NCBI GenBank assembly: GCA_964035545.1
Contig: CAXIUT010000203.1
Span: 1-21,049, forward strand
Length of the DNA stretch: 21,049 nucleotides
Direction of reading: 5' to 3'
Origin: Bugula neritina
Taxonomy: Eukaryota > Animalia > Bryozoa
The stretch's first letter is position 1, and each line of letters begins with the position of its first letter. Positions 2,829 to 21,049 of this stretch are shown here, piece by piece. The position numbers and the translations under genes are program-made. Under the pieces are notes generated by a model. That model had not been told where the DNA came from. It was given only the letters and a program-made list of their open reading frames with translations, and did no database searches.

Positions 2829-2883
2829 GTCCAACAAACGGTTCATATCGCGGCTGGGCGCGATATAACCTTATTCGTTGTGG
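2829..2883 (+). other. attC-like recombination site (55 bp)
   Basis: R'' GTCCAAC (2829-2835), 5-nt spacer, L'' GTTCATAT (2841-2848), CGCG-gctggg-CGCG, L' ATATAAC (2863-2869), 7-nt spacer, R' GTT (2877). L'' pairs with L' leaving one extra C (bottom-strand extrahelical G). Confidence 0.8.
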
Positions 2884-3701
2884 CTGACGGTGTTGGAGGC
2901 CATCAAGCAGGCGAAGTTGCCAGTACAACGGCCTATAAATCATTTAGAGATAGTATGGTGATGTCTGCAAATGAGCCAATGCTTGAGTCCAGGCTGGAAG
3001 ATGCTACACGCGCTGCTAATTCTGCAATAAGACAAGCCATTGAAGATAATCCACGACTCAAGGGTATGGGAACCACAATTGTTGCTGCAGTCATTTGTGA
3101 AAGCAGAGTTTCATGGCTCAGTGTAGGCGATTCTTTATTGCTGGTCTTACGTAAGGGGTATAGTGAGACTAAACGTCTGAATGCAGATCATTCAATGGCG
3201 GCTGTACTGGATTCACAGGTTAAACAAGGAATCGTTAGTGCTGAAGAGGCGGCAACCTCACCTAATCGCAATACACTTACATCCGCTCTTGCAGGAAGCA
3301 AGATTAATAAAGCCGATCTTCGGATTGATGGTCATATGCTTGAACCTGGTGATACTTTAGTCGTTGCCAGTGATGGTATTTTGACATTAAAAAGTATAGA
3401 AGTCGCTGATATTGTTAATAGAGCCATCTTACATGGACATCAATCTGATAAATTGGCACAAAAACTTATCAAGGCTGTTGTTGATAAGAATATCAGCGGT
3501 CAAGACAACACAGCCATTGTTTGTGCCCACTATCCTGGGTACAAACAAAAAAATCTCCCAGTTAATAGGGGTGCAAATAAACTTCAACCTACAAGAAAAA
3601 AGTTTAGCCCTCTAATCTTACCGATTATTTTTATATGCCTCCTTGCGGGAATTTATTTTTCTTATAATTTTTACAAGAACTCGATATCTGAGAGCCTTTA
3701 A
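2880..3701 (+). CDS. PP2C/PPM Ser/Thr protein phosphatase, C-terminal part, with C-terminal transmembrane helix
   Basis: Motifs VADGVGGH, GMGTT, SVGDS, DHS, ASDG and GQDN, then hydrophobic PLILPIIFICLLAGIYFSY. Motif 1 is missing here and lies at 361-477. Confidence 0.93.
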   Translation: MADGVGGHQAGEVASTTAYKSFRDSMVMSANEPMLESRLEDATRAANSAIRQAIEDNPRLKGMGTTIVAAVICESRVSWLSVGDSLLLVLRKGYSETKRLNADHSMAAVLDSQVKQGIVSAEEAATSPNRNTLTSALAGSKINKADLRIDGHMLEPGDTLVVASDGILTLKSIEVADIVNRAILHGHQSDKLAQKLIKAVVDKNISGQDNTAIVCAHYPGYKQKNLPVNRGANKLQPTRKKFSPLILPIIFICLLAGIYFSYNFYKNSISESL

Positions 3702-3970
3702 TGCCACAACGAATATGCACCTATATGTCAATGACAGAAGATTCTATTGGTACGAGAATGGCTGGTTCAAAGAAAGAATCCTACTGTTATAGTCCAGAAG
3801 AGTTTAAGGAAAGAGCTGAAATCATGATAGCGGCGACTAATACTGAAATAGTTACTCTTAATAATAAATACAACGATTTGAGTATGAAATATAAGAATAT
3901 TGAGGGAAAATATCAAGCTATTCTTAATGGAAATAAAAAACCAACAGCAGAATCCGAAAAAAATCGATGA
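3701..3970 (+). CDS. Hypothetical protein with coiled-coil-like segment (possibly a frameshifted C-terminal tail of the PP2C)
   Basis: 89-aa ORF with TAATG overlap to the PP2C stop, filling the gap before the kinase. Heptad-like stretch IVTLNNKYNDLSMKYKNIEGKY. Confidence 0.55.
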   Translation: MPQRICTYMSMTEDSIGTRMAGSKKESYCYSPEEFKERAEIMIAATNTEIVTLNNKYNDLSMKYKNIEGKYQAILNGNKKPTAESEKNR

Positions 3971-4047
3971 AAAAAGATTCAGGTTATTTTTAAAGGTTTA
4001 AAAAATCATATGGATTTTAAAATAACTAGTAATAAAGGTGAGTTTTC

Positions 4048-6453
4048 ATGAATCAAAGCCCCGGGGCGCTTCCTATTGGAACCATCGTTGATAATTATAG
4101 AATTGATAGTATCCTTGGCCAAGGTGGTTTCGGTATTACTTACCTCGCGCATCATATAAATCTCAATAGCCGTGTCGCAATTAAAGAAAGTTTTATTAGC
4201 GCTTTATCCATTAGGAATACCAATAGAATAACAGTCCATCCAAATCCGGATGGAAAAGACGCTTTCGAGAAGGCTACAAATAGATTTCTTAATGAGGCCA
4301 AGAGGGTTTGCGAGTTAAAACACTCAAATATCATAAAAGTTAGTAATTTTTTTAGAGCCAATAATACCGCCTATATGGTGCTTGAGTATATTAACGGTAT
4401 TACACTAGAGGATTGGCTTAATAAGCTTGATCGCCCACCAACCAGACAAGAAATAAAAAATATTACTGTGCCATTACTTGATGCATTGGAGTACATGCAT
4501 AGCCAAAAAATGCTGCATCGTGATATTGCACCAGATAATATTATCATTCGACCTGATAATGACCCTTGCTTAATAGATTTTGGTTCTGCTCGTTATTTTA
4601 CTGCCAGAAACAGTCATTTGTTAACAGCTATAGCAAAACCAGGATATTCTCCTCCTGAACAATGGGTAAGCAAGAGTGGGGCACATGGGCCATGGTCTGA
4701 TATTTATGCTTTTGGCGCTACACTTTATCGCGTAATCACTGGTGAAAATCCATCTTGTGCAACTGTTCGTACAGTGAGCATTGGAGAAGAGGGGACTGAT
4801 AGTCTTCTTCCTGCAAGCAGTTCGGTTCCTCATGATATTTATCAACAACCTTTTCTTGATGCGATAGATAATGCCTTGATGTTGAGGCGTGCTGATCGTC
4901 CCCGGAGTATTGATGCATGGCGGAAACAGTTATTTACAGGGCATACAGAGAAGGAGGAGTCTAAGTGTCAAACTGAAAACACACAGTCTGATGAAGCAGC
5001 TCCAGATGAAAGCACTCTAACGGATACCCTGCCGCTAGGTACCATCGTGGATCGCTACAAGATTGAAAAGGTACTGGGCCGAGGTGGTTTTGGTATCACT
5101 TATTTAGCACGTCACATTGAGCTGGGTACTAAAGTGGCATTAAAAGAAAGTTACCCAACAGCTGTGTCTGGCCGTGATACCACTACCAGCAGGATTTACC
5201 CAATTCAAACAAAAGAATTTGAGAAAATAACAAAGTGGTTCAAAGGCGAAGCTGACACCTTAAGAAGATTCAATCATCCCAATATTGTTAAAGTCACTGA
5301 TTTTTTTCATGCTAATGATACAGCTTATATGGCAATGGAGTTTATTGAAGGCTGTACGTTTGAAGAGTGGCTAAATAAACTCAATCGACCACCAACACAG
5401 GAAGAATTGGATAAAATTACAGAGCCGCTATTGGATGCATTGGAACAAGTGCATAAAGAGATATTGCACCGTGATATTGCACCAGACAATATTATCATTC
5501 GACCTGATGGTACGCCTTGTCTGATTGACTTTGGTTCGGCTCGGTTTTTCACTGCGGGTCAATCTAACCTTCTCTCTGTAATCGTAAAGCAAGGTTATTC
5601 TCCTCCTGAACAAATTGTTAAATATAGTAAAGCCCATGGCCCATGGTCTGATATTTATTCTTTTGGAGCGACACTTTATCGTGCTGTAACTGGGAATGTT
5701 CCGTTGGGGGCACAGGATCGTTCTGATGAAGATGGGGATAGTCTTGTGCCTGCTGTTGAAGCGGCTCCTAAAGGTATGTATCGGCGTGAATTTTTGCAGG
5801 CTATTGATCAGTCTCTGAAGCTTGTGCGGACGAAGAGACCACAAACTGCAACAGAATGGGGGGGCGAGTTATTTAGGGTAAAAGAATTTGTGAGCCAATC
5901 TGTTCTACCTTCTGGTTTTCAGTTTTCGGCAGAGCAGCTATTCTGGGGGGCAGCTGGAATTTTTTCAGGGGTGTTGATTCATTTGACATCTACAAGCGCC
6001 TTGGCTTCTCTGGGAGTATCTTTATTATCAGTAATCTTTTTTATTAAATATTTTGCAAAGGAGAGTTGGTGGACAGCTTTAGCCTTGATTTTCAAATTAA
6101 TATTAATAACGTTGCCCTATAGTATTTTTTTTCTACCAATAACTGGCTCTGTTGAATTGGAAATATACAGCATTGATGACTGGGCGTTTTTTGCATCCTT
6201 ATATCCACTGTTATATTTTCCACTAATATTTTCGATGATAATTACCTTTTATAGAAAAAAGAAGGTGTTTAGCTTGAGCTTGTTAAAATTTTATGCAATA
6301 TCTTTTTCTGTTGCTGCATTATGGTATCTTATCTTAGGCCCTCTCCCTTCTTTTTTTGATGAAGTGGAAATAAATTTAAATGCTTTTTACCCTGCATCAG
6401 TCTTTTCTATCTTATGGGTATTTACAGTTATTTTCCTAAAAAAAAGAGGTTAA
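4048..6453 (+). CDS. Membrane-anchored Hanks-type Ser/Thr kinase with two tandem kinase domains
   Basis: Two copies each of LGxGGFG, VAxKE, HRDIAPDN, DFG, GYSPPEQ and WSDIY. About six hydrophobic segments at the C-terminus. AAAGGTGAG RBS-like sequence upstream. Confidence 0.95.
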   Translation: MNQSPGALPIGTIVDNYRIDSILGQGGFGITYLAHHINLNSRVAIKESFISALSIRNTNRITVHPNPDGKDAFEKATNRFLNEAKRVCELKHSNIIKVSNFFRANNTAYMVLEYINGITLEDWLNKLDRPPTRQEIKNITVPLLDALEYMHSQKMLHRDIAPDNIIIRPDNDPCLIDFGSARYFTARNSHLLTAIAKPGYSPPEQWVSKSGAHGPWSDIYAFGATLYRVITGENPSCATVRTVSIGEEGTDSLLPASSSVPHDIYQQPFLDAIDNALMLRRADRPRSIDAWRKQLFTGHTEKEESKCQTENTQSDEAAPDESTLTDTLPLGTIVDRYKIEKVLGRGGFGITYLARHIELGTKVALKESYPTAVSGRDTTTSRIYPIQTKEFEKITKWFKGEADTLRRFNHPNIVKVTDFFHANDTAYMAMEFIEGCTFEEWLNKLNRPPTQEELDKITEPLLDALEQVHKEILHRDIAPDNIIIRPDGTPCLIDFGSARFFTAGQSNLLSVIVKQGYSPPEQIVKYSKAHGPWSDIYSFGATLYRAVTGNVPLGAQDRSDEDGDSLVPAVEAAPKGMYRREFLQAIDQSLKLVRTKRPQTATEWGGELFRVKEFVSQSVLPSGFQFSAEQLFWGAAGIFSGVLIHLTSTSALASLGVSLLSVIFFIKYFAKESWWTALALIFKLILITLPYSIFFLPITGSVELEIYSIDDWAFFASLYPLLYFPLIFSMIITFYRKKKVFSLSLLKFYAISFSVAALWYLILGPLPSFFDEVEINLNAFYPASVFSILWVFTVIFLKKRG

Positions 6454-6652: not shown

Positions 6653-7685
6653 ATGAAATTTGTCTCTCGTCTCAGTGCAGAAGTTAAGCTGACTTTGAGT
6701 GAAGCACAGCAGCATCACCCATCCTCCCGCACGCGTCAACGTGCTCATGCCATACAGCTCAGTAACAAAAGTTATACACTGTCACAATTAGCGGATGTGT
6801 TTAGTGTACGTAGCCATACCATCAGCCAGTGGATTGATGCCTGGGAAGCCTCGGGAGTGGTTGGCTTGTTTGACCTGCCGAGGAGTGGGCGACCGGCGAC
6901 TTTAACCGCTGATGAAGTCGAGCGTTTTCGGCATTATCTTGATAAGAATCCGCATCAGCCCAAGAGCGCTATCGCTCTGTTGGAAGCAGAGACGAATAAG
7001 ACTGCCAGTGATGACACCTACAAACGCTGTTTGAAAAAAATTTTACCGTTGGAAACGACTACGGACTTCCAGCAAGGAGCAACGTGACGAAGAGACCTTC
7101 CGTAAAGACCAACAGGTGATGATCTATCTACAAGAGAAGGAAGACGCGGGTGAGATTTGCTTGCGCTACTTTGATGAAGCTGGCTTTAGCCTCACCCCCA
7201 GCGTCCCTTATGGATGGCAAAAGGTGGGAGAAACTTGTCGTATCCCGTCTCAAAAGAGCAAACGTCAGAATGTACTCGGATTTATGGGCCGTCAGGGTGA
7301 GTGGTTTTATCAGGTTAAAGAAGGCTCAGTGACCACAGAGACTGTGATTGAAGCTTTCGATGCATTCTCGCAGAAATACTACGAAGAGGAGTTTTTGAAA
7401 ACGGGCAAGCTGTGTTTTGTGGCCATTGATAATGCATCCATGCATACCAGTGCTGCCTTCAGGGCACGAATGGAAGACTGGCTCTTGCGTGGTGTCATAC
7501 CACGTTACCTTCCGACCTATTCACCGGAATTGAATTTAATCGAAATTTTGTGGCGGAAGATAAAGTACGAATGGCTACCTTTGCAGGCATTCAGAGACAC
7601 TATCCACTTCAAATATTGGTTGAACAAAATTCTTGAATCGATAGGTGATGAATATCAAATTAATTTTGCTCAAACGGCAAAGTGA
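6653..7685 (+). CDS. IS630 transposase, split at an A7 tract (7034-7040) into an HTH ORF (6653-7087) and a DDE ORF (to 7685)
   Basis: N-terminal HTH and PRSGRP motif. The +1 frame continues KKFYRWKRLR..., with DDE motifs YFDEAGF, IDNASMH and YSPELNLIE. Confidence 0.9.
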
Positions 7686-8162: not shown

Positions 8163-8564
8163 TCACAGCTCAACATCCTTCAACGATTTCGCAATCAACG
8201 GAAACTCAGCAACAATCTTCTTATCCATCGTAAACAGCTTAACCCCAAGACTCATAGCCAAAGCAACATACTCACAATCATAAGCAGAACAATTACTCTG
8301 ATTCACAAGCGATAGAATACTCAAAGACTTAACATCATATTCATTACCAGCCATCAGCGTTTCAGCCTCATCCTGAATTTGCAACGCCTTCTCATAAGTA
8401 ATAAGCCCTTTCCGCAGATACAAAGCCAAAACATTCCTGAATTCACTACGCCAAAGATAAGGCGCAACCCACACAGATTCTTCTTCAAGTAGCTTCTCAG
8501 CTTGTGGGGTGTACCTGGTCGGCAGGTATAAATAAACCAGTACATTCGTATCGACAACAATCAT
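8163..8564 (-). CDS. vapC: VapC/PIN-domain toxin
   Basis: MIVVDTNVL, SEFRNVL, SAYDCEYVALA and LFTMD supply the PIN acidic residues. 133 aa, overlapping the upstream antitoxin by 4 nt. Confidence 0.93.
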   Translation of the reverse strand: MIVVDTNVLVYLYLPTRYTPQAEKLLEEESVWVAPYLWRSEFRNVLALYLRKGLITYEKALQIQDEAETLMAGNEYDVKSLSILSLVNQSNCSAYDCEYVALAMSLGVKLFTMDKKIVAEFPLIAKSLKDVEL

Positions 8565-8803
8565 GCTCTGCCTTCATTGATAGCATCTTGAATATCATCA
8601 ATATCAATCAAACTGGCATCAATGTCATTACGTAGCTCTCTGGCGCGTTGTAAGTGTTCTGATGGCGTCACTCGCTTAGGCAGGAGCATCTGCTCAAGGC
8701 AATGAATCAGCTCACTGTTTATACTTCTACGGTGGGCAGAAGCCGCCTCCTTAAGCCTGCTGTAAAGTGGATCAGGTATGTTTTTAACGGTAATCGCTGC
8801 CAT
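8561..8803 (-). CDS. FitA/Arc-like ribbon-helix-helix antitoxin
   Basis: MAAITVKNIPDPLYSRLKEAASAHRRSINSELIHCLE is a typical RHH antitoxin N-terminus. It lies immediately upstream of the PIN toxin. Confidence 0.9.
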   Translation of the reverse strand: MAAITVKNIPDPLYSRLKEAASAHRRSINSELIHCLEQMLLPKRVTPSEHLQRARELRNDIDASLIDIDDIQDAINEGRA

Positions 8804-10308: not shown

Positions 10309-11927
10309 CTCGACAGTCATAAGTTAGTTCGCACGCCGAAGCGCACCATCTTCATTATACCAGTGATTACGACCCGCTTATGTGCTTGATTGAAGGTATT
10401 TTAGCCGGATACATACTCGTCAGGCTCTTCATCCCCCTGCAGCGCCTTCCGAATTTTCCCCCACATCGTATTTTGGCTAGTCTGCAATAAATGGCGTGCC
10501 AATAATGGCGCTAAAATTTGCCGAACAGTGTTTTCTGACGGCAATTCTCTGGAACGCGTGCGTAAATACAGGATTTGCTGTTTCCACAGCCCCTGATGAT
10601 AGCGTAGCGAAAACAGTTGCAATAATCCGGTAGCCACACTGGCACAGAATACAAACGTTTCCATAGCACGCCAACAGGCGACGACTTTCTCAACATGTTG
10701 AGGTTGAGGGTGTTTAATCTTCTTGTTCGATTTTGGTTGGCGGGAATGGCGTGGCAGATAACGCGTCCAGAAATGAAAACGAAAAGCGCCCAGTTTGTTT
10801 TTCAATACATCAAATAGTATTTCAATTCTGACCCGGCGACAGTAGAGCATCAGCACCTGTTCGGGTGGGGCGGTTAAGTCAGAACACATCAGTACGATAG
10901 GGCCTCGCGAGGTGATGGCCCAGACAAACTGGAGGTAATCACCCAGCGGTCGCCACAATAAACAGGCGGCCATCAGCTGAACGGTTTCCTGCTGACCATA
11001 AACCGTCATGTCTACCTCATGAAACAGGTCGGGATGATCAAAAGCCTCCCAAACGGTCATTTTATCACCGTACTTTCGTGTTCGACCCCGCTGCCCGGGC
11101 CGTCGGGGTGGCGGTGGAAAAAAGGCCACATAGTTCTTTTTTGCCCGTGCGACGACATGGAGATAGGGCTGTTTCAATGCCACGGAGTATACGGAACGGG
11201 CCAGCTTAAAGACGGTGCTCACCGCGAAGAACGCATCGACCACCAGCCAGGCCGGTTTGTCATGAGCGACGGCAACATTCAGGGCCATTCTCACTGGCCT
11301 TTCAGCCATTGAGTCATCCGGATCGTTAATCCCTATATGCTGAAAGCCCTGATGGATTTGCAGGGTAAGCGGGAGACAAAAACAAGCGGGCAATGACCCG
11401 ACCAGTACACCGATGGCACCCCAACATTGACCACGAAAATAGCTCGGTTTACTTTGAGTCTCAGAGGTTTCCCGGCGAGAGACTACACCGGGCATTCGAC
11501 CACCGTCCTTCACCACATCGGTATGATCAGCCAGCATTACCGGACGACCCAGTACCTCTACCAGAGTAACCCGGCTGAAAACATAGCGGTGCCAACAATG
11601 CCGTAGCGAATCCAGGTCATAAGACCCGGCACGAAAAAAAATGGAGCAACCGATGGTAGCCCTGTTCATTTGATAACCAGTAACGACACATCGACGTTAC
11701 GCCTATCATCTCTGTCGCGGCCAGAAAGCTAAGAATGATGGCGCAGAACAATAACCAGCTACGTTCGCGAGAAAATTCGCTTCTAAAATTGGTGAGGGCG
11801 TGGTATAGATCGGGAAGCATGGAATTCCTTAGGTTCGTGTGTTTAGTCGCCACTGACTGTAAGGGATTCCATGCTTCTCTGCTGGAAATTATGGTTAAAC
11901 GACACGACAGAACTTATGACTGTCGAG
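10309..11927 (-). mobile_element. Insertion sequence (IS701/IS4-like DDE), 1619 bp
   Basis: Perfect 17-bp TIRs CTCGACAGTCATAAGTT (10309-10325) and AACTTATGACTGTCGAG (11911-11927). 7-bp direct repeat AGCAGTT at 10302-10308 and 11928-11934. Confidence 0.93.
10401..11820 (-). CDS. DDE transposase (IS701/IS4-like), frameshifted at a T8 run (11634-11641)
   Basis: The N-terminal ORF MLPDLYHAL...YHRLLHFF joins FFRAGSYDL... if one T is removed. Motifs ADHTDVVKDG..MPGV, VVDAFF and YCRRVRIEILF (YREK-like). Family assignment is from memory of motifs only. Confidence 0.82.
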
Positions 11928-13036: not shown

Positions 13037-14311
13037 CTATCCCAGTTTCCGCAACATCTCCATCCCCAGCTCACGCTCCGTCATCGCTATATAAGCCGCA
13101 TAGCCCCGCAGGCGCTGTAAACTCTCGCCTTCGGGTAATGGCTTGCCCTGATTCAGGTTATGAATCGCTGCCCGCATCTGACGTTTTAGCTTACGGCTCA
13201 CCCGTGGCCCGTGCTGCTCATTGACGATTAGGCCGGTAACGTTTTGGGTGCTGCCCTGGCGAATGATGCGGGTCTTTTTGGTGTTCACCTGAAAACCCTC
13301 ATCGCGCACAATAGTCTGCACACTGCCGAGTAGCTGACTAATTGCCGGTTCGCCTTTGCTTTTGACTGGTAAGCTGAAGGTTAAGTCATCCGCATAACGT
13401 GTATAACGCCAGCCCAGTTTATTTGCCAACCCACTCAGTCGCCGATCCAGTTTCAGGCACAGCGCATTGGTCAGTGCCGGACTGGTCGGTGCGCCCTGTG
13501 GCAGACAACGATCACCCAGCGCAATAAAATAAGTTTGCCCATTATTTTCTACCACCTCACGCGGCGATTCAGTGCAAAGCAGTGCCAGTAATGTGGCAAT
13601 TTGCTCGCCATAACCCGCTTTGCGAAATACACCGCGCACCCGTTTCCAGCTCACCGTCGGGAAGAAGTCAGCAATATCCATCTTCACTAAAACACGGCTA
13701 GCGCTATGTTGCGCAGCATTCGTGGCAGTAGAGCGCCCGGCGAGAAAGCCGTGAGCGGCACCATGTACTAACAGACGCTCCAGGATATTATCCAGAATCC
13801 AGCGTTGCGCCTGTTTCAGCTGTGGGCGTGGTGCCCAGATAGCACGACTGCCGCCGGAACGTTTGGGAATCTCAAAGCGGGCATAATGCGTTTTGGTGGC
13901 AGCCTCACGCTGATAACACAGGTGACGCAGTTCGGCGACGGATAGCGCCAGCGCCTTGGCCAATTGAGAAGCTTTGCTCATCACCGGTAGATGATTTTCC
14001 AACAGGCGTTTCTCCGCATCCTGTAAGTCCCACTGGTCGCCCGCCATTTCATCGTGCCAGTAAATACCTTCGCCAAGGTGAACGATGTGCGTCGCTTTAT
14101 ACGCCTGCCATGCTTCCTGTTTGATCTTACGCTTTTCCGCCGCCTCTTTTTTCAGCTCGGCCTTATAACGTTTGAGTGCGGAAGCTGACATTTTGTCTGT
14201 TGCTTTACGCTCGACCATAAAGCCACGTTCTTTGAGCTGTTGGTTAACGTACCGATTAATGCCACCGGCCTGTTCAATAGCTTCCCAGCGTTTCTGCCAT
14301 GTCATTGTCAT
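13037..14311 (-). CDS. Retron-type reverse transcriptase (Mx162-like, type XIII) with N-terminal extension
   Basis: IPKRSG, AHGF, region X NAAQH, DIADFFPT, LPQGAPTSP, YTRYADDLTFS and region Y VTG (QNVTGLIVN). The N-terminus W.AI..AGG...KATHIVHLGEG resembles myxobacterial retron RTs. Likely start is ATG 14311 or 14305, after AAAGGA. Confidence 0.93.
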   Translation of the reverse strand: MTMTWQKRWEAIEQAGGINRYVNQQLKERGFMVERKATDKMSASALKRYKAELKKEAAEKRKIKQEAWQAYKATHIVHLGEGIYWHDEMAGDQWDLQDAEKRLLENHLPVMSKASQLAKALALSVAELRHLCYQREAATKTHYARFEIPKRSGGSRAIWAPRPQLKQAQRWILDNILERLLVHGAAHGFLAGRSTATNAAQHSASRVLVKMDIADFFPTVSWKRVRGVFRKAGYGEQIATLLALLCTESPREVVENNGQTYFIALGDRCLPQGAPTSPALTNALCLKLDRRLSGLANKLGWRYTRYADDLTFSLPVKSKGEPAISQLLGSVQTIVRDEGFQVNTKKTRIIRQGSTQNVTGLIVNEQHGPRVSRKLKRQMRAAIHNLNQGKPLPEGESLQRLRGYAAYIAMTERELGMEMLRKLG

Positions 14312-14347
14312 GATTGTAATATTGTCCTTTAGCTGTCTGAGAACCAA

Positions 14348-16228
14348 TTAAGCGGTGGTGTCCATAAAGCCGCTGTTTTCCAGCTGCTGAATTTTGGCGA
14401 GGTAAGCGCTACGCGCCTCAGCGATGGAGTTGAATGCGAACTGCTGTTGGCGCGGTCGCTGTGCCTTTTCCCATTCCATTACCAAACGCTGCTGATTGAG
14501 CGTGAGGCGATACTGTTCTTCACGTGTCTGGCGGCGGCGCGAATAGGTGCGGGTTTCCTGGGTGATTTGGCTGGCTGTGCGCCCGGCCTGTTGCTCGGTA
14601 TAGGCTAAACGTAGCGCAATGAGATGGCTGCACGGGCCATGACTCAGGCCATGTTTCATAATCTGGTGGCAACTACATTCCGCTTTGGCGACATGGCCTT
14701 CTTCATTCAGGCGCAGGCGAGCCAGATAAGTGCGGCGGTCTTCTTTGACTTTGATCTCAGCGCTGATTTCCACGCCTTCGCCGTGAATCATGCGGGTTTC
14801 CAGTTTCCCCAATGCCTGTTGTCGTTCGATTAAATCGAAGGCCAGTTTCTCGGCGGGCTGGCGAAACTGAAACAGCGCCATGTCCAGCGGTTCCTGCGTT
14901 AACGGTCGATAGCGGTATTGCTCCGTCGCTAAGTCAAACATCAGCAATCCCTGCTGACAGGCTTGTTGCAGCGCAGCACTACAGTCTTTGCGGCTGAGCT
15001 TAGTGGCTTTGCTGATTTGTGCCAGCGTGGCCCGCTGTTCCTGTTGCACATACTTGACGACACTTTCCAGTGTATCGGCACTATCAGCGCGCCGTGGCAG
15101 CATAAGATCAAAATTCAGTGCCTGTGACCAGTTGCTGGCCGTAAAGCCGGTAATCGCCAACGTTAAGCAAATACCCTTACCGCGTAGTATCCAGAAACTC
15201 GGCATACCGTTACCCAATAACGCCACTTCAATGCTGTCGGTATAAGGTAGAAAGCGCTTGAGTAAAGCCAGCCGCCGCCGACCCCAAAGTCGAATAATCT
15301 GCGCCTGTTTACCGACATAAGCTGCTGCTGAGCTGGTGATCACGGTGTCGTCCGGCTCCAGCACCAGTAAGGGCTGTTCTCCCGGTACTAATTCAATACG
15401 CAGACCACGACGCTTGCCTTTAACATCCGCGTGCATGCGCAGATGATGTAGCGCGTTGTACAGGTCAATCGGTTTGAGCTGGAACTGTGTGCTGGGAAGC
15501 TGCGCTGAGGACTGTACCTGTAAGAAGCCACGTAACCAGCTGGTGGGAACATTGATCTGCTTTTCCAGTACATCAGCGTCTGGTAGGTCGGGCGCGGTTT
15601 CGGTTTGCAAGCTAACCGCTTCCTGTCCGACCGAAAAGCGTGTGGCCCGCTGGCTGCGAATTTGCTCAATGCCCTGCGCGAGTGCATCGCTGAAATCTAT
15701 ATTGGTAGTGCCACACTGTACCTCGCCTTCAATGTCAAAAAAGCTATGATCAAAGCTCAGCATGGCGTAGCTACCTTCGTCTTTGCTGAATACTTCGAAG
15801 CTGATTTGATCCTGCTGCACGTTAATCACCGGATCGAGAATTAGCCATGCCTGTGGGTCATTCTTTAATAACCAGTCAAAGTAGGCACACTGCGCTTTCA
15901 TTAAGCCCTGGTTCTCGCTATTACGCCGCATGCGCATAAACGCGGTGTAGGCGGTACGATCCTTCGGCACATAGCGGTAGTCGCTGCTGACGACGGCGAA
16001 TAAGGTTGCCATTGCTTCGCGAAAGGCTATCGGTTGCTGCACGCTGGCGTTAAAGCGAACGGCTTCGCGGTTGAGGTGGCTGAATAATTGCAGATGATCC
16101 TGTTGGAATTCACTGGGCTGCTGATAACGCAGGGTTAGTGCAACGGCATTTTGGGCTGTTGTTACGCCCATTGTTTCGGTCGCCGTGTTGGTATCCTGCT
16201 GTTGCGCGGGCTGGTTCTTCTGGCTCAT
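14348..16228 (-). CDS. SWIM zinc-finger protein with wHTH-like segment and degenerate C-terminal WGR-like domain (retron-associated)
   Basis: SWIM CxC-x12-CxH: AECSCHQIMKHGLSHGPCSHLIAL. wHTH-like TLAQISKATKLSRKDCSAALQQACQQGLL. C-terminal YRLTL..LVMEW...QQQFAFNS..EARSAY...L...GF. LDPV..V..D.I.FEVFSKDE block. Confidence 0.85.
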   Translation of the reverse strand: MSQKNQPAQQQDTNTATETMGVTTAQNAVALTLRYQQPSEFQQDHLQLFSHLNREAVRFNASVQQPIAFREAMATLFAVVSSDYRYVPKDRTAYTAFMRMRRNSENQGLMKAQCAYFDWLLKNDPQAWLILDPVINVQQDQISFEVFSKDEGSYAMLSFDHSFFDIEGEVQCGTTNIDFSDALAQGIEQIRSQRATRFSVGQEAVSLQTETAPDLPDADVLEKQINVPTSWLRGFLQVQSSAQLPSTQFQLKPIDLYNALHHLRMHADVKGKRRGLRIELVPGEQPLLVLEPDDTVITSSAAAYVGKQAQIIRLWGRRRLALLKRFLPYTDSIEVALLGNGMPSFWILRGKGICLTLAITGFTASNWSQALNFDLMLPRRADSADTLESVVKYVQQEQRATLAQISKATKLSRKDCSAALQQACQQGLLMFDLATEQYRYRPLTQEPLDMALFQFRQPAEKLAFDLIERQQALGKLETRMIHGEGVEISAEIKVKEDRRTYLARLRLNEEGHVAKAECSCHQIMKHGLSHGPCSHLIALRLAYTEQQAGRTASQITQETRTYSRRRQTREEQYRLTLNQQRLVMEWEKAQRPRQQQFAFNSIAEARSAYLAKIQQLENSGFMDTTA

Positions 16229-19200
16229 GCGGCAGCTCCCTGTGAGTCGTTAGTGGTGCTGGCTTTGGCGCTTGTTTTGGTTTGCGCACGTTGGCTGCGG
16301 CGTAAGGCGCGGAATGCAGCGCGGGCGATGTCTTCATCCATGTCTGCTTGCTGGTGAATTTCCTGTAGACAGGCTTCAGCATCCGCGTTGCGTATCCGGC
16401 CCAGTCCTTCAATTGCCCCAATGCGGCGTGTTTCATCTGCTGTTGCATCGTGCGCAATGGCTTTGAGCGCTTCGGTATTTTGCTGACGTACCAGTATGGG
16501 TAGGGCGCGGGCCTGGCGTTCATCGTTGGCCGCAGCGGACAGCGCTGGCGTAAAGTTCTTTTCTGCCAGAATCTGTGGCTGGTGTAAGAAGCTTTCCCAA
16601 TCAAAGTCGTCTTTGCTGGTGCCGTGCTGGCGGATGGCCTGTTGAGCTAGTTGGCGTAACTGGTGTGCCGGGCTGTCCAGTAATTGGCGCACCGCTGTTA
16701 GCAGATCGGTATCTGTGCATTTTTCCAGCCGTAATAGTGCCTGTAATATCGGCTCATGGAACAGCTGTAAAGCAGGTTCAGCACTCAGTAGTGTGTCAGC
16801 GAGCAATGGCGTTTTCACCTGTTGCACAACAGCGGCCCGCAATAAATTGCTCACTGTGGTTTGGCGCATAGTGCGCTGTTCCAGTAGTGCCTGATGGTGT
16901 GGGTTATAGCCGCTGCGATTTGCTGAACGCTGTGTTTCAGTCCAGCATGTATGCCACTGTGCCAGTTGAGTTTTCAGCGCCTGTTGTAGTGCGGTTTGAA
17001 TGCTTTTTACCGGCTTAGGCTGGAGCGCGGCGAGGTGTGCGATTATGCCCACCGTTTCAGTGCGTTCGGCGGCCAGGCCCTGTGCAATATCGCCGGGCTT
17101 GTGGTCGTCTTTGAGTAGCAGCGTGCGCTGTAACTGGGCGCGAATACCGGCGTCATCCAGTTGCATATTGCCGGTCAGTAATTCCAGTAGCTGTGCAGTA
17201 GTGGCGTATTTGAGGATACGTTCCAGCATTTTTCTGTCGCCAAAGTGCTGATGCGAGTCGGCAAAGTGGCCCTGCATAAAGGCGAGGTCGATTTCGCTGA
17301 CCTGATCGCTGGCGGGCTGCCACAGGTAAATGGCACTGTCGATAGCTTCTTCGACTTCGTCCCAATCGTCGCTTTCACGCAGCATCTTCAACAGTAAGGC
17401 GCGACTTTGGGCATGATCCCAATAACGCAGCTGTTTAAGCGCAAATGCGCGTGAATGGCTGTAGCGCTCGTTATCAGTAATGAAATCACATAGCACTTGC
17501 CAGCTCGCCAGCGTATTAAACCAGCGCAGTCCGCTAATCGCCCGTTCATTCATATCGCTCCAGCTATCGGCGTTTTTCAATGCCTGTTGCAGCAATTTGA
17601 GAATCTTCTCGGCATGTTCACTATCACCCAAATGACCGATGGCCTCAATCGCGGCTTCATTGAGCGCGTGCTCGCTATCCGTCGCCAAATCCAATAGCTT
17701 ATCCAGCACGTTAATATCGCCGGATTCGCCCAGCGCAATCACTGCTCGCTGGCGTTCATCTATATCGTCCAGAAATTCCATCGCGGCCAACAACACATTA
17801 TTGCCCTGCGGATGTCCGCTACGGCCCAAACCTTCGGCGGCGCGGAACTGTATCTCTGCGTCTTTATGGCCGAGTTGATTGAGTAAGGCTTCCACTGAAC
17901 CGTTGCGGCGACGGGCGCGGGTACTAATGGTTTGCAATATCTCTGCCAGAAAGTCATCGTTAGCAACATTGCTTGCATCAGCTAATGCCTCATCTACCGC
18001 TGGATTAGCGGCCATCCAGACCATGCCTTCCAGCATATCGGCGGCGTACTTGTGCTGATCGCAGTTGATTAGTGTATTGAAATGGCGGATCGCAATCCCG
18101 TCATAGCGTGGCTGTTGTTTGTCCAGCCAGCTGCGGTCTGCGGGTTCTTCCTCGTCATCGTCCATACTGTACGGGATATCTTGGTCATAACCGCTAATAC
18201 AGGTGAGCGCCTGATTTAAAGCATTGCGCAGTTGGCGACTCATGTCCTTACGGGCCAAACGCTCCAGCAAAGTGTCAGCTACGGCAGTGTCACGCGTCTG
18301 TCCAATACGGTGATAAACCGGCTCCGCTGTAGTCTTTAGTGTTTCCCGGTTTTCAGTGCAGGCCGCGAGGAACGTTGCTAACCCGCTTCCCTGCCAGGCA
18401 CCACCGATATTCAGCAGTGTTTGTTGCTCACGTTCACTTTCACTGCTGTGCCACAGTGTTTCCAGTGCCGCGAGTGCTTTGTCATGCTGATGTTGCATCA
18501 GGATGCGTAGAGCCTTTTCCGCTACCTTGCGTGCCGGATTGTTACAAGCTGTTACCAATAGCTCCGCCACACCTTTGCGTGCATACTGTTCGCCCAGCTC
18601 AGCTACACAGCGTCGCCCGACAGAGGCGGTATAAGATTGCAGCGCCAGCGGTGCGATTTTGAGCAGGTTTTCGACCCGTTTGGCTGTATCCATTGTATCA
18701 GCTGTATCAGTTGCTTTATCACCACCTGCTGTTTTATCACCGCCCGCATTTAGCAGTAACTCATAGGCTTCCGTCGCCAACACCGGAGAGCCTGTGACCA
18801 ACATATCTTCCAGCAGTTTACGTGATTGTTTCAGTGGCGTGTGTTTAACCAGAAGCTGCAAGCCAGCGGTCGCAATATCATCATGGCGTGAGGTAGTAGC
18901 GGCATTACCCAGTGCGTCCGGTTCGACTTCCAGTGTGAGCAGGTCATCAAAAGCTTTCTGGCGAATCGGCTGCTGATCATGGTTAAGCAGTGTCATTAAG
19001 CAGCTCACCACACCCGCCCGCAGATTCTTGTCACCCTGCTGAGCTAAGCGCTGTAGTCCCTGCATCGCCTGTGTGCGCAGGTTCATGGTGGCGGCATAAC
19101 CACCCTGTTCGTGCTCAGTGCGCAGCAGGCCAAGGTAAGCACCAAACGCCGTCTGCCAGCGTTGCGGCTGGGTTTTGTTGCTGGCGGTTTGTGGTTTGGA

Positions 19201-21049
19201 CTGTTTTTCTGCGGCCTGGATCAGCGTGTGGTAACGCTGTGCGAAAGCCTGATAGCTGGCCTGCCACAGTTCTTTACCGCCGCGCCCGTCGAGTGCAATG
19301 ATCGAGATAAAATCAATCAAACGCGCCCGCAGGCGGTTGTCGCCATGTACCAGAATTGCCGCAATCTGGCGCAGTGTTTCTGCGGCCAGCGTCCATTCCT
19401 GTTTATCTGCCCGCACTAAGCGACGACTAAACCAGCGTTGCAGATAGGCCCAGCGCGCAGCATCGTCATGATACAGGCTTAACACATCGGCACAGCGGCG
19501 TTGCAGGGAAGGGATGTCCAGCGCTAAAGCACGCAGACTGAGTTCAGGCTGTTTGCCGTGTAATAGAAATTCATGGCTGAATAAAGCCAGCACACTGGTG
19601 TTAGTAACAGCGGCATTGCGTAGCGATGAATGTAATGCCTGCACGCTGAGCGTGGTGTCGCTTAGTGTGACGGCCAGCCGGGCTTGTGGTGTCAGTTTGT
19701 CACGCAGCTTCCTATCGCGCAGTGCCTGTTGTCCGCGTGAGTCATTGAGTAGCGCTAAGGCATAAGCTGCCTGCGCCCGCATCACTATGTATTCATGGCC
19801 CAGTAATCCGGCCAGTGTTTCGGTGTGTTCGGAATGGCTAACCCAGGGTAGGGCTAAGGCGGCTTCGTCTGCCAGTTTGCTGTCACTGTGCTGTAATAGC
19901 GGCGCAATATGCTCAAAAGCACGACTATCTTCCAGCAGCCCCAGACCGCGCAGACCGTAAACGACATGCGTATGCCATTCCTCATGGTCTTTCTTGGACT
20001 GCGGCTTCTCCCGCAGAATCAGCTCAAGCAACGGCTCATAAGCCTGAGTCAGCCCAAGCTGAGCGCAGGCAATCGCGGCCTGGGTGCGCACATCGGTATA
20101 GTCACTATTGAGTGCCTGTTCCAGCGCCTCGGTGCGCTTGGTGAGCATAATCGCCTGTAGCGCATTGAGGCGTAGCTCCGGCACGTTGTCCTGTAGCAAG
20201 GTTTCCAGCAGGACATGGTCTTTTGCCGTTGGCTTTTTCGCGACCTGTTTAAGTACAGTCTGGCGCATATCTTCGAATGGCGAAGCCACGGCCTGTAGTA
20301 ATATTTGCTGACGATCGAAGCGCTTCTTCTCCTTTAGCGCCTGTCGCAAGGCTTCCAGCCGGATGGCAGTAAAGTTATCGGCAAATAGCTCCGGCAATAA
20401 GGTCTGCGCCCAGTCCTCTTTCAGCGCAGCGAGTGTTTCATTCAGTACTTCACGATGAATATTTTCATACTGACTGTTGAGTAACAGACGCAAAGTGGCG
20501 GGCAGGTCGCCGCCTAACTGGCGATTGCGGCTGACTTTAAACGCTTCCTGACGCACATCCTCAAATGGATCATTGAGTGCCTGTGTCAGTAATTCAACGC
20601 CTTCCTGCGCAATGTTTTTACCTTTACCCAAATGATCAAGCAGGGTTTTTAATGCGCGCTTATGGATATTCTCGTGCTGAGCTGCAAAGCCATAGCGTAC
20701 CAATGTCCACGGCTCGTCTGCTAATAAGGCTTCCAGCGCACTGAAAGCTGCATCACGCACGGCATCACTGCCGTCACTGAGCAGGAAATCGAGTTGCTGC
20801 ATCGCATCCGCCTGTTGTAACAGCGCGAAGGCCCGGCACACACCAACCCGAATGGTGTCGTCTTTTTCCTGACTCAGGAGTAGTAATAAACCGAAGGCGC
20901 GCTGGTCCTGTAATACCGCCCAACGCAAACGCTGATGCAAAACAAATGTCGGCGTGTTTACTGGTCATGCCCTGTAATAAGGGGGGCGTAATCGGCGTGC
21001 TGTAATTTTTTCAGGCTTTCCGATGAAGGTGTCGTGGTTGTGGTTGTAC
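16225..21049 (-). CDS. Giant HEAT/ARM-repeat protein (>1600 aa, 5' end outside window; two apparent 1-nt insertions near the window edge)
   Basis: Repeated HEAT/PBS-like units (L.D....VR..A..AL). The frame extends past 20940 as ...SLKKLQHADYAP/LLQGMTSKHADICFASAFAL/AVLQDQRAFG if one base is removed at G6 (20981-20986) and C3 (20919-20921). The stop overlaps the SWIM ATG by 4 nt. Confidence 0.88.
18683..18748 (-). repeat. Short in-frame tandem repeats within the HEAT gene
   Basis: Three ~9-bp units (GCTGTATCC/ATTGTATCA/GCTGTATCA) and two ~18-bp units, encoding AGGDKTAGGDKATDTADTMDTA. Confidence 0.6.

Follow-up and report, generated by a model that had tools for sequence, protein, structure and literature searches.

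Part of a type XIII retron operon with a predicted clamp-like SWIM protein on a bacterial contig of a bryozoan assembly

The window analyzed here is contig CAXIUT010000203.1 of the Bugula neritina assembly GCA_964035545.1, taken in its entirety (21,049 nucleotides, 21 kb; one of 321 contigs in a 216-Mb assembly). Its minus strand carries the 3′ two-thirds of a type XIII retron operon, with genes for a giant HEAT/ARM-repeat protein (HEAT2), a SWIM zinc-finger protein and a retron reverse transcriptase (RT). As a whole, the region is probably best explained as part of a type XIII retron operon whose multicopy single-stranded DNA (msDNA) would form a complex with a clamp-like SWIM protein and whose output would be enzyme-free. 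Retrons, which are RT systems of bacteria, rank among the known anti-phage defences. The locus is correctly identified but ordinary; the layout with two HEAT genes is already known and the copy is incomplete. Its features are as follows.

16225-21049, minus strand: HEAT/ARM giant HEAT2, C-terminal ~1,615 residues; main frame 16225-20919, cut by the contig end
14348-16228, minus strand: type XIII SWIM protein, 626 amino acids (aa); PADLOC SWIM_XIII 1.5e-183; more than 2,100 homologues, the closest in Thiolinea (86%)
15122-16057, minus strand: residues 58-369 of the SWIM protein, predicted PCNA-like two-domain clamp fold with a helical insertion at ~84-131 (AlphaFold2 (AF2) model, Foldseek and VIA-align)
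14909-15076, minus strand: winged helix-turn-helix (wHTH), residues ~385-440; Pfam HTH_24 0.0034, several wHTH families across homologues
14582-14893, minus strand: SWIM zinc-finger domain, residues ~446-549; CxCx12CxH, weak Pfam SWIM matches in 24 of 28 homologues
14351-14575, minus strand: WGR-fold domain, residues ~552-626, by VIA-align fold match
14312-14347, minus strand: spacer between the SWIM and RT genes, 36 nucleotides (nt); 28-30 nt in relatives
13037-14311, minus strand: retron RT, 424 aa, with the ~110-aa N-terminal extension typical of type XIII; ATG start at 14311

The three open reading frames (ORFs) span 16225-20940 (1571 aa), 14348-16228 (626 aa) and 13037-14347, and the HEAT2 and SWIM genes overlap by 4 nt (16225-16228). 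These coordinates agree with a preliminary description of the locus as three co-oriented, packed genes with a 4-nt overlap and a 36-nt gap. With its ATG at 14311, the RT has the same length as its Thiolinea orthologue, and the retron signatures named in that description, NAxxH (here NAAQH), YADD and VTG, can all be read in the translation. The RT matches PADLOC RT_XIII at 9e-169 (560 bits over residues 13-434; the next model, RT_other, scores 307 bits) and Pfam RVT_1 at 7e-24. Its closest solved relative is the Ec86 retron RT (2e-41). HEAT2 matches the PADLOC profile HEAT-ARM_XIII PDLC02919 with an E-value of 0, covering only profile positions 571-1971 of 1972, and Pfam HEAT_2 at 1e-41. An additional weak PADLOC match, HEAT_CxxC_PDDEXK (E 0.0024), covers the HEAT repeats only and does not indicate a nuclease.

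PADLOC thus places all three genes in retron type XIII, and by every sequence criterion that could be tested they belong to it. The locus is a standard member of a published type, which PADLOC or DefenseFinder would call Retron_XIII. Of the earlier label, a "type XIII-like" candidate, the type holds for all three genes, while the novelty implied by "-like" does not, the two-HEAT layout being present both in PADLOC and in Mestre 2020 (PMC7736814). In that study, type XIII corresponds to RT clade 10 and includes Retron-Mxa1/Mx162, Mxa2/Mx65, Sau1/Sa163 and Nex2/Ne144. A survey of SPIRE found it to be the third most abundant retron type and among the most widespread (PMC13712802). Outside the last 130 nt of the contig, HEAT2, the SWIM gene and the RT gene are open frames under strong purifying selection, with dN/dS values against Thiolinea of 0.07, 0.04 and 0.04, respectively, at saturated dS.

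Many genomes carry these genes together and in this order. In relatives, the complete unit consists of an msr-msd non-coding RNA (ncRNA; ~235-240 nt), HEAT1, HEAT2, the SWIM-WGR gene and the RT gene, and this order is conserved at loci L002, L003 and L004. Four further loci, L005-L008 (RT 25-39% identical), were left out, as phmmer found no SWIM homologue nearby. HEAT1 (~1,070-1,090 aa in the three relatives examined) matches PDLC02921, while HEAT2 (~2,100-2,200 aa) matches PDLC02919 and combines an N-terminal WD40 propeller with a HEAT solenoid. The relatives' proteins cover both PADLOC HEAT-ARM profiles over their full length. The three genes first described as a system are, accordingly, a fragment of one with four protein genes and an ncRNA. 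Compared with a complete type XIII operon, the window copy has no ncRNA and no HEAT1, and its HEAT2 is short of ~615 N-terminal residues, including the WD40 end. Its BLASTP alignment to a 2094-aa Verrucomicrobial orthologue begins at orthologue residue 602. Neither HEAT1 nor the HEAT2 N-terminus was found in the window or on any other contig of the assembly, where a HEAT1 profile search was empty. The upstream sequence, proposed earlier as a check, is unobtainable, as the window is the whole contig. Because the ncRNA and HEAT1 lie beyond the contig end, the functionality of this copy cannot be judged.

The complete system brings BRCT and WD40 modules, still with no enzyme. The BRCT domain of HEAT1 (gene at L014:4719-7952) lies at about residues 624-729; it matches NCBIfam models of BRCT-bearing pol III epsilon and LigA at 9e-15 and is also found in Atlas, with a weak match in Pfam. 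The WD40 beta-propeller occupies about residues 107-300 of HEAT2, whose N-terminus is encoded at L004:1794-3600. Searches of Pfam, PADLOC and NCBIfam with the window proteins and the relatives' HEAT1 and HEAT2 found no recognisable catalytic domain across the whole system, in line with the earlier remark that the partners show no obvious toxic enzymatic motif.

To locate the ncRNA of this subclade, we turned to the relatives. The gaps flanking the RT gene are 35-36 nt, and the spacer between the SWIM and RT genes holds no msr-msd because 36 nt is too short for one. A ~240-nt block upstream of HEAT1 in three relatives is conserved across Gammaproteobacteria and Verrucomicrobia, the element occurring in three phyla-level lineages, and a 20-nt motif taken from it retrieved 35 metagenome loci. 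HEAT1 adjoins the motif in 19 of these, with the motif upstream and on the same strand in most; in those 19, HEAT2 and the SWIM gene follow downstream of HEAT1 wherever the sequence extends far enough. The ncRNA of the subclade thus lies upstream of HEAT1, ~11.5 kb from the RT gene. In Mx162, by contrast, the msr-msd lies directly upstream of the RT gene.

After removal of motif matches without the shared ncRNA (L020, L032 and L049), 27 sequences were aligned. RNAalifold folds them into a predicted structure of 66 pairs, with compensatory changes at 43. By direct count, 96.8% of cells are paired, against 35-41% with slid partners, and the covariation score is 0.65 against ~0.1, a value that no shuffle attains. 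The a1/a2 stem pairs GUCUA with UAGAC, plus flanks, and is followed by a G in a conserved UAGC context; this G, directly after a1, would be the branching G. Beyond it come two hairpins of the msr and one long hairpin of the msd, in which a 30-bp segment varies at every pair beneath a conserved loop. This plan is canonical for a retron: the a1/a2 stem, the UAGC branching-G context, the msr hairpins and the long msd hairpin are common to characterised retrons and the subclade. From the span of the alignment columns, we infer an msDNA of ~140-160 nt. Mestre 2020 (PMC7736814) reported four lineage-specific type XIII RNA families, and in a 2026 preprint type XIII is one of the retron types for which no msr-msd had been identified.

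The ncRNA also varies in number and orientation. In four loci it is tandemly duplicated, the copies lying 350-975 nt apart (L023:2015-3274, L027:5755-6512, L028:3636-4272 and L050:5580-6216). The msr parts of these copies are near-identical and the 30-bp msd stems completely different, so one RT may serve two different msDNAs. In another sublineage, the ncRNA lies on the strand opposite HEAT1 (L022:8914-9198, of which L042 is a duplicate; L029:1071-1355; L043:10377-10661). It would therefore be divergently transcribed and cannot belong to the operon transcript, and its branch site reads AUUUAGC rather than GUCUAGC. Three loci (L027, L033 and L034) have a good ncRNA copy with no HEAT1 homologue nearby by phmmer; here the ncRNA may pair with a different accessory set. 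Separately, we considered the ~80-codon tail of the SWIM gene beyond the PADLOC profile as a hidden ncRNA, and rejected it, as this tail encodes a WGR domain conserved at the protein level.

The domain content first assigned to the SWIM protein (SWIM, wHTH and WGR) is borne out by Pfam or fold matches for all three folds, and our modeling adds a predicted PCNA-like clamp fold in its N-terminal half. The AF2 model was built from a 28-sequence alignment (pLDDT 71, pTM 0.67). Foldseek against the PDB returned at least 500 significant matches, and all among the matches listed are sliding clamps (E ~1e-7, probability 1.00). VIA-align superposes residues 58-369 on archaeal and human PCNA with Z 15.9 and a root-mean-square deviation (rmsd) of 2.9 Å over 220 aligned residues. 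These cover 220 of the 245 residues of archaeal PCNA, that is, the whole two-domain protomer. Domain 2 (225-360) is modeled with confidence, while domain 1 includes the helical insertion at low confidence. At the sequence level, phmmer and profile searches of PDB sequences and Pfam detected no homology to clamps, and no solved relative was found by sequence for either the SWIM or the HEAT partner.

The last 187 residues were modeled separately (pLDDT 80). In the SWIM finger, C518, C520, C533 and H535 form the CxCx12CxH motif, with Cys and His invariant in 28 homologues, and the region matches the folds of ZSWIM8 (Z 9.1) and Shu2 (Z 5.4). The WGR region matches the N-terminal domain of 2ra8 (Z 11.1, rmsd 1.8 Å) and the WGR domains of PARP-1 (Z 8.0-8.3) and PARP-3 (Z 7.8). 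The W-G-R triplet itself is degenerate in the window (WEK) and reads RWG in Verrucomicrobial relatives.

Taken with the ncRNA, this domain content suggests how such a system may work. A single transcript would run from the promoter through the ncRNA and then HEAT1, HEAT2, SWIM and RT. The RT would prime from the 2′-OH of the G in the conserved GUCUAGC beside the a1/a2 stem and copy the msd into an msDNA with a ~45-bp hairpin, its stem hypervariable and its loop conserved. The nucleic-acid-binding modules of the SWIM protein may hold this DNA hairpin and the RNA-DNA branch, with the clamp and wHTH on the duplex and the WGR domain, as in PARP, at an end or a junction. The whole assembly would be housed in a very large scaffold built of HEAT, WD40 and BRCT modules. 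As in characterised retrons, the complex might then be released or rearranged when phage factors bind, modify or degrade the msDNA. Because no enzyme is present, the output would most likely be stoichiometric: a clamp-like, end-binding complex could contact DNA or partners in the replisome and thereby stall replication, or it could recruit a host enzyme.

Several points weigh against this reading. We infer msDNA binding, the complex and its output from domain content alone, and the clamp fold comes from an AF2 model of moderate confidence, lower still for the first domain. No retron ncRNA was found in the window by Rfam, motif, inverted-repeat or sliding minimum-free-energy hairpin searches; at E ≤ 1 over the full window, the sole Rfam match was to a microRNA and due to chance. 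A DNA search with the Thiolinea ncRNA and a motif search found none elsewhere in the assembly either, and the copy is thus incomplete as assembled. HEAT2 carries two frameshifts at the contig end. In the literature searched, no anti-phage activity is reported for any type XIII retron, and Mestre 2020 (PMC7736814) found a moderate correlation of type XIII with host 16S, which points to vertical inheritance and possibly a role outside defence. As to the ncRNA, its expected site lies past the contig end, and its absence reflects an assembly fragment and is not evidence against membership in type XIII. The preliminary description had called the effector mechanism unsettled, and indeed the literature searched yielded no mechanism paper and none giving a structure, trigger, effector activity or phenotype for type XIII; nor did it yield one tying type XIII to a clamp fold, or a retron to PCNA.

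The strongest alternative, although an unlikely one, is that type XIII is a vertically inherited module of DNA metabolism or damage response, not primarily one of abortive infection, in which the msDNA and a clamp/BRCT/WGR scaffold sense or mark DNA ends or nicks for the host. All accessory domains are indeed of the DNA-repair adaptor kind (PCNA-like, BRCT, WGR and SWIM), with no toxin domain found. Orthologues occur across the Thiotrichaceae genera Thiolinea, Thiofilum, Cocleimonas and Ca. Thiocaldithrix, with synteny to a Thiolinea metagenome-assembled genome (MAG), which matches the vertical-looking, 16S-correlated inheritance in Mestre 2020 (PMC7736814). Additionally, WGR/DUF4132 proteins are reported to belong to DNA-damage regulons (PMC8533742), although this serves as a lead only. 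However, every functionally characterised retron type is anti-phage, and the neighbourhood is island-like, with transposases, VapBC and a kinase resembling PD-T4-6. Furthermore, the msd stem is hypervariable among close relatives and sometimes duplicated, as expected under diversifying conflict, and the system is distributed over several phyla with near-identical conserved ncRNA blocks.

A second alternative, which we consider very improbable, makes the SWIM protein itself the toxic effector, a nuclease or an enzyme derived from a transposase with an acidic block as its metal-binding active site. The idea was put forward in Mestre 2020, and this block, LDPV...FEVFSKDE, had been proposed in the preliminary description as a possible cryptic active site. 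Within it, D132, E145, D150 and E151 are invariant in 28 homologues (down to 51% identity); E222 is also invariant, and D178 and E188 are nearly so. The spacing fits the published DEDE motif (Dx7[D]x4E...) of Mestre 2020 (PMC7736814), where it was read as a hint of transposase ancestry. In the AF2 model, however, residues 132-222 sit in strands and loops of the clamp fold, and the motif region forms clamp domain 1; as noted, all matches listed of at least 500 for the model are sliding clamps. No likeness of this region to an RNase H-like protein, nuclease or transposase was found by fold or sequence (Foldseek, VIA-align, PDB sequences, Pfam and NCBIfam), although a metal site grafted onto the clamp fold is conceivable. 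The supposed active site is thus an already published motif placed by the model inside a PCNA-like clamp and not in a nuclease or transposase fold. Together, the modeled clamp and the wHTH, SWIM and WGR modules argue for a DNA-holding role and against the transposase or nuclease idea.

Equally doubtful is that the window copy is a decaying remnant, a pseudogenised retron in a region rich in insertion sequences (IS), as two HEAT2 frameshifts, integrase and transposase fragments among the neighbours, and the failure to find the ncRNA and HEAT1 in any assembly contig might suggest. The apparent HEAT2 start at TTG 20940 is an artefact: tblastn with the Thiolinea orthologue reads on to 21049 in two other frames, with orthologue residues 617-642, 638-658 and 659 onward falling in three successive frames. 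The shifts coincide with a C6 run (20981-20986) and a GGG (20919-20921), each one base too long relative to the orthologue. Both are single extra homopolymer bases in the final 130 nt, and contig ends are where assembly errors accumulate, so such an error is more likely than a true frameshift. The two shifts point to a consensus of poor quality there. In the other 7.9 kb, the three ORFs (1,564, 626 and 424 codons) run without interruption and have intact motifs and the low dN/dS values given above, and the missing upstream part is explained by the contig ending inside HEAT2 and by the little sequence that this bacterium has in the assembly.

Returning to the type XIII retron reading, we also advance, as a decidedly speculative and rather improbable generalisation, that retrons of type XIII serve immunity or surveillance as machines without an enzyme. 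In them, a PCNA-like clamp protein fused to wHTH, SWIM and WGR would load on or cap the retron's own long msDNA hairpin within a HEAT/WD40/BRCT scaffold of more than 3,000 residues. An attack by phage factors on that DNA would free the clamp-like complex, which would then act in a stoichiometric manner on DNA ends or the replisome, and the msd stem, hypervariable and in some loci duplicated, would be an evolving bait.

The contig is a chromosomal fragment of a Thiolinea-like gammaproteobacterium associated with the animal and co-assembled with the bryozoan genome; it is not animal DNA. This assignment follows from the identity of the RT (88%) and the SWIM protein (86%) to a Thiolinea sp. MAG and from downstream synteny: a proline racemase gene, convergent with and downstream of the RT gene, is conserved at 88% on the Thiolinea contig. 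The SWIM family is frequent in Thiotrichaceae (Thiolinea disciformis, Thiofilum flexile, Cocleimonas and Ca. Thiocaldithrix), and its cultured carriers include Thiolinea disciformis and Thiofilum flexile. The contig is bacterial in character; its genes are densely packed and include fragments of integrases and transposases, a VapBC pair, the proline racemase, and a PP2C and tandem-kinase pair. The neighbouring features are as follows.

2880-3701, plus strand: PP2C phosphatase, in a low-GC island
3701-3970, plus strand: small ORF, in the low-GC island
third gene of the low-GC island 2880-6453, plus strand: 801-aa protein with two Ser/Thr kinase domains; PADLOC PD-T4-6 4.7e-88, mad6 1.2e-95
8163-8803, minus strand: VapC-like PIN toxin of 133 aa, overlapping an upstream ORF of 80 aa; probable VapBC toxin-antitoxin pair

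The low-GC island (2880-6453, plus strand) holds these first three genes at 35-43% GC against ~53%. The 801-aa kinase protein near the retron is a candidate kinase-based anti-phage gene. Mobile-element debris lies at 699-2245, 6653-7685 and 10401-11669 and comprises a truncated tyrosine integrase, a Y2 transposase fragment, an IS630-like element split into helix-turn-helix and DDE_3 ORFs, and a DDE transposase. The retron stands at the edge of this IS-rich stretch.

For a retron type still unsolved, modest new leads come from the clamp-like fold, the lack of an enzyme in the domain set and the mapping of the ncRNA, whose location and covarying 30-bp stem allow exact constructs for msDNA and binding experiments. 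Compared with characterised retrons (Ec86/Eco1 of type II-A, Ec78/Eco7 of type I-A, Eco8 and Kva2 of type IX), the window RT is homologous, whereas their enzyme effectors (for example N-glycosidase, ATPase-nuclease, OLD nuclease or HEPN) have no counterpart in the ~4,300 accessory residues here. The SWIM protein shares with PCNA and other sliding clamps the predicted two-domain protomer fold but is only 8-14% identical to them, carries an extra helical insertion of ~45 residues in domain 1, and is fused to wHTH, SWIM and WGR domains. Its C-terminal 180 residues match, at the level of fold, the PARP-type WGR domain and the eukaryotic SWIM domains of ZSWIM8 and Shu2, both of which recognise nucleic acid or partners. 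It differs from these in having neither a PARP catalytic domain nor a cullin or Rad51-paralogue context, and its W-G-R triplet is degenerate in the Thiotrichaceae lineage.

The closest likeness is to retron type XIII as defined by Mestre 2020 (PMC7736814). The window RT likewise matches RT_XIII and has the N-terminal extension, and its SWIM protein shares the DEDE motif, winged helix and CxCx12CxH finger of cluster 114_1. A HEAT/ARM gene precedes the SWIM gene here too, and a variant with two HEAT genes is mentioned in that study. In contrast, the WGR domain stands at the C-terminus of the SWIM protein in the window and at the N-terminus of the HEAT/ARM protein in the main cluster, 216_1. By the logic of gene fusion, this difference suggests that the SWIM and HEAT/ARM proteins work in contact.

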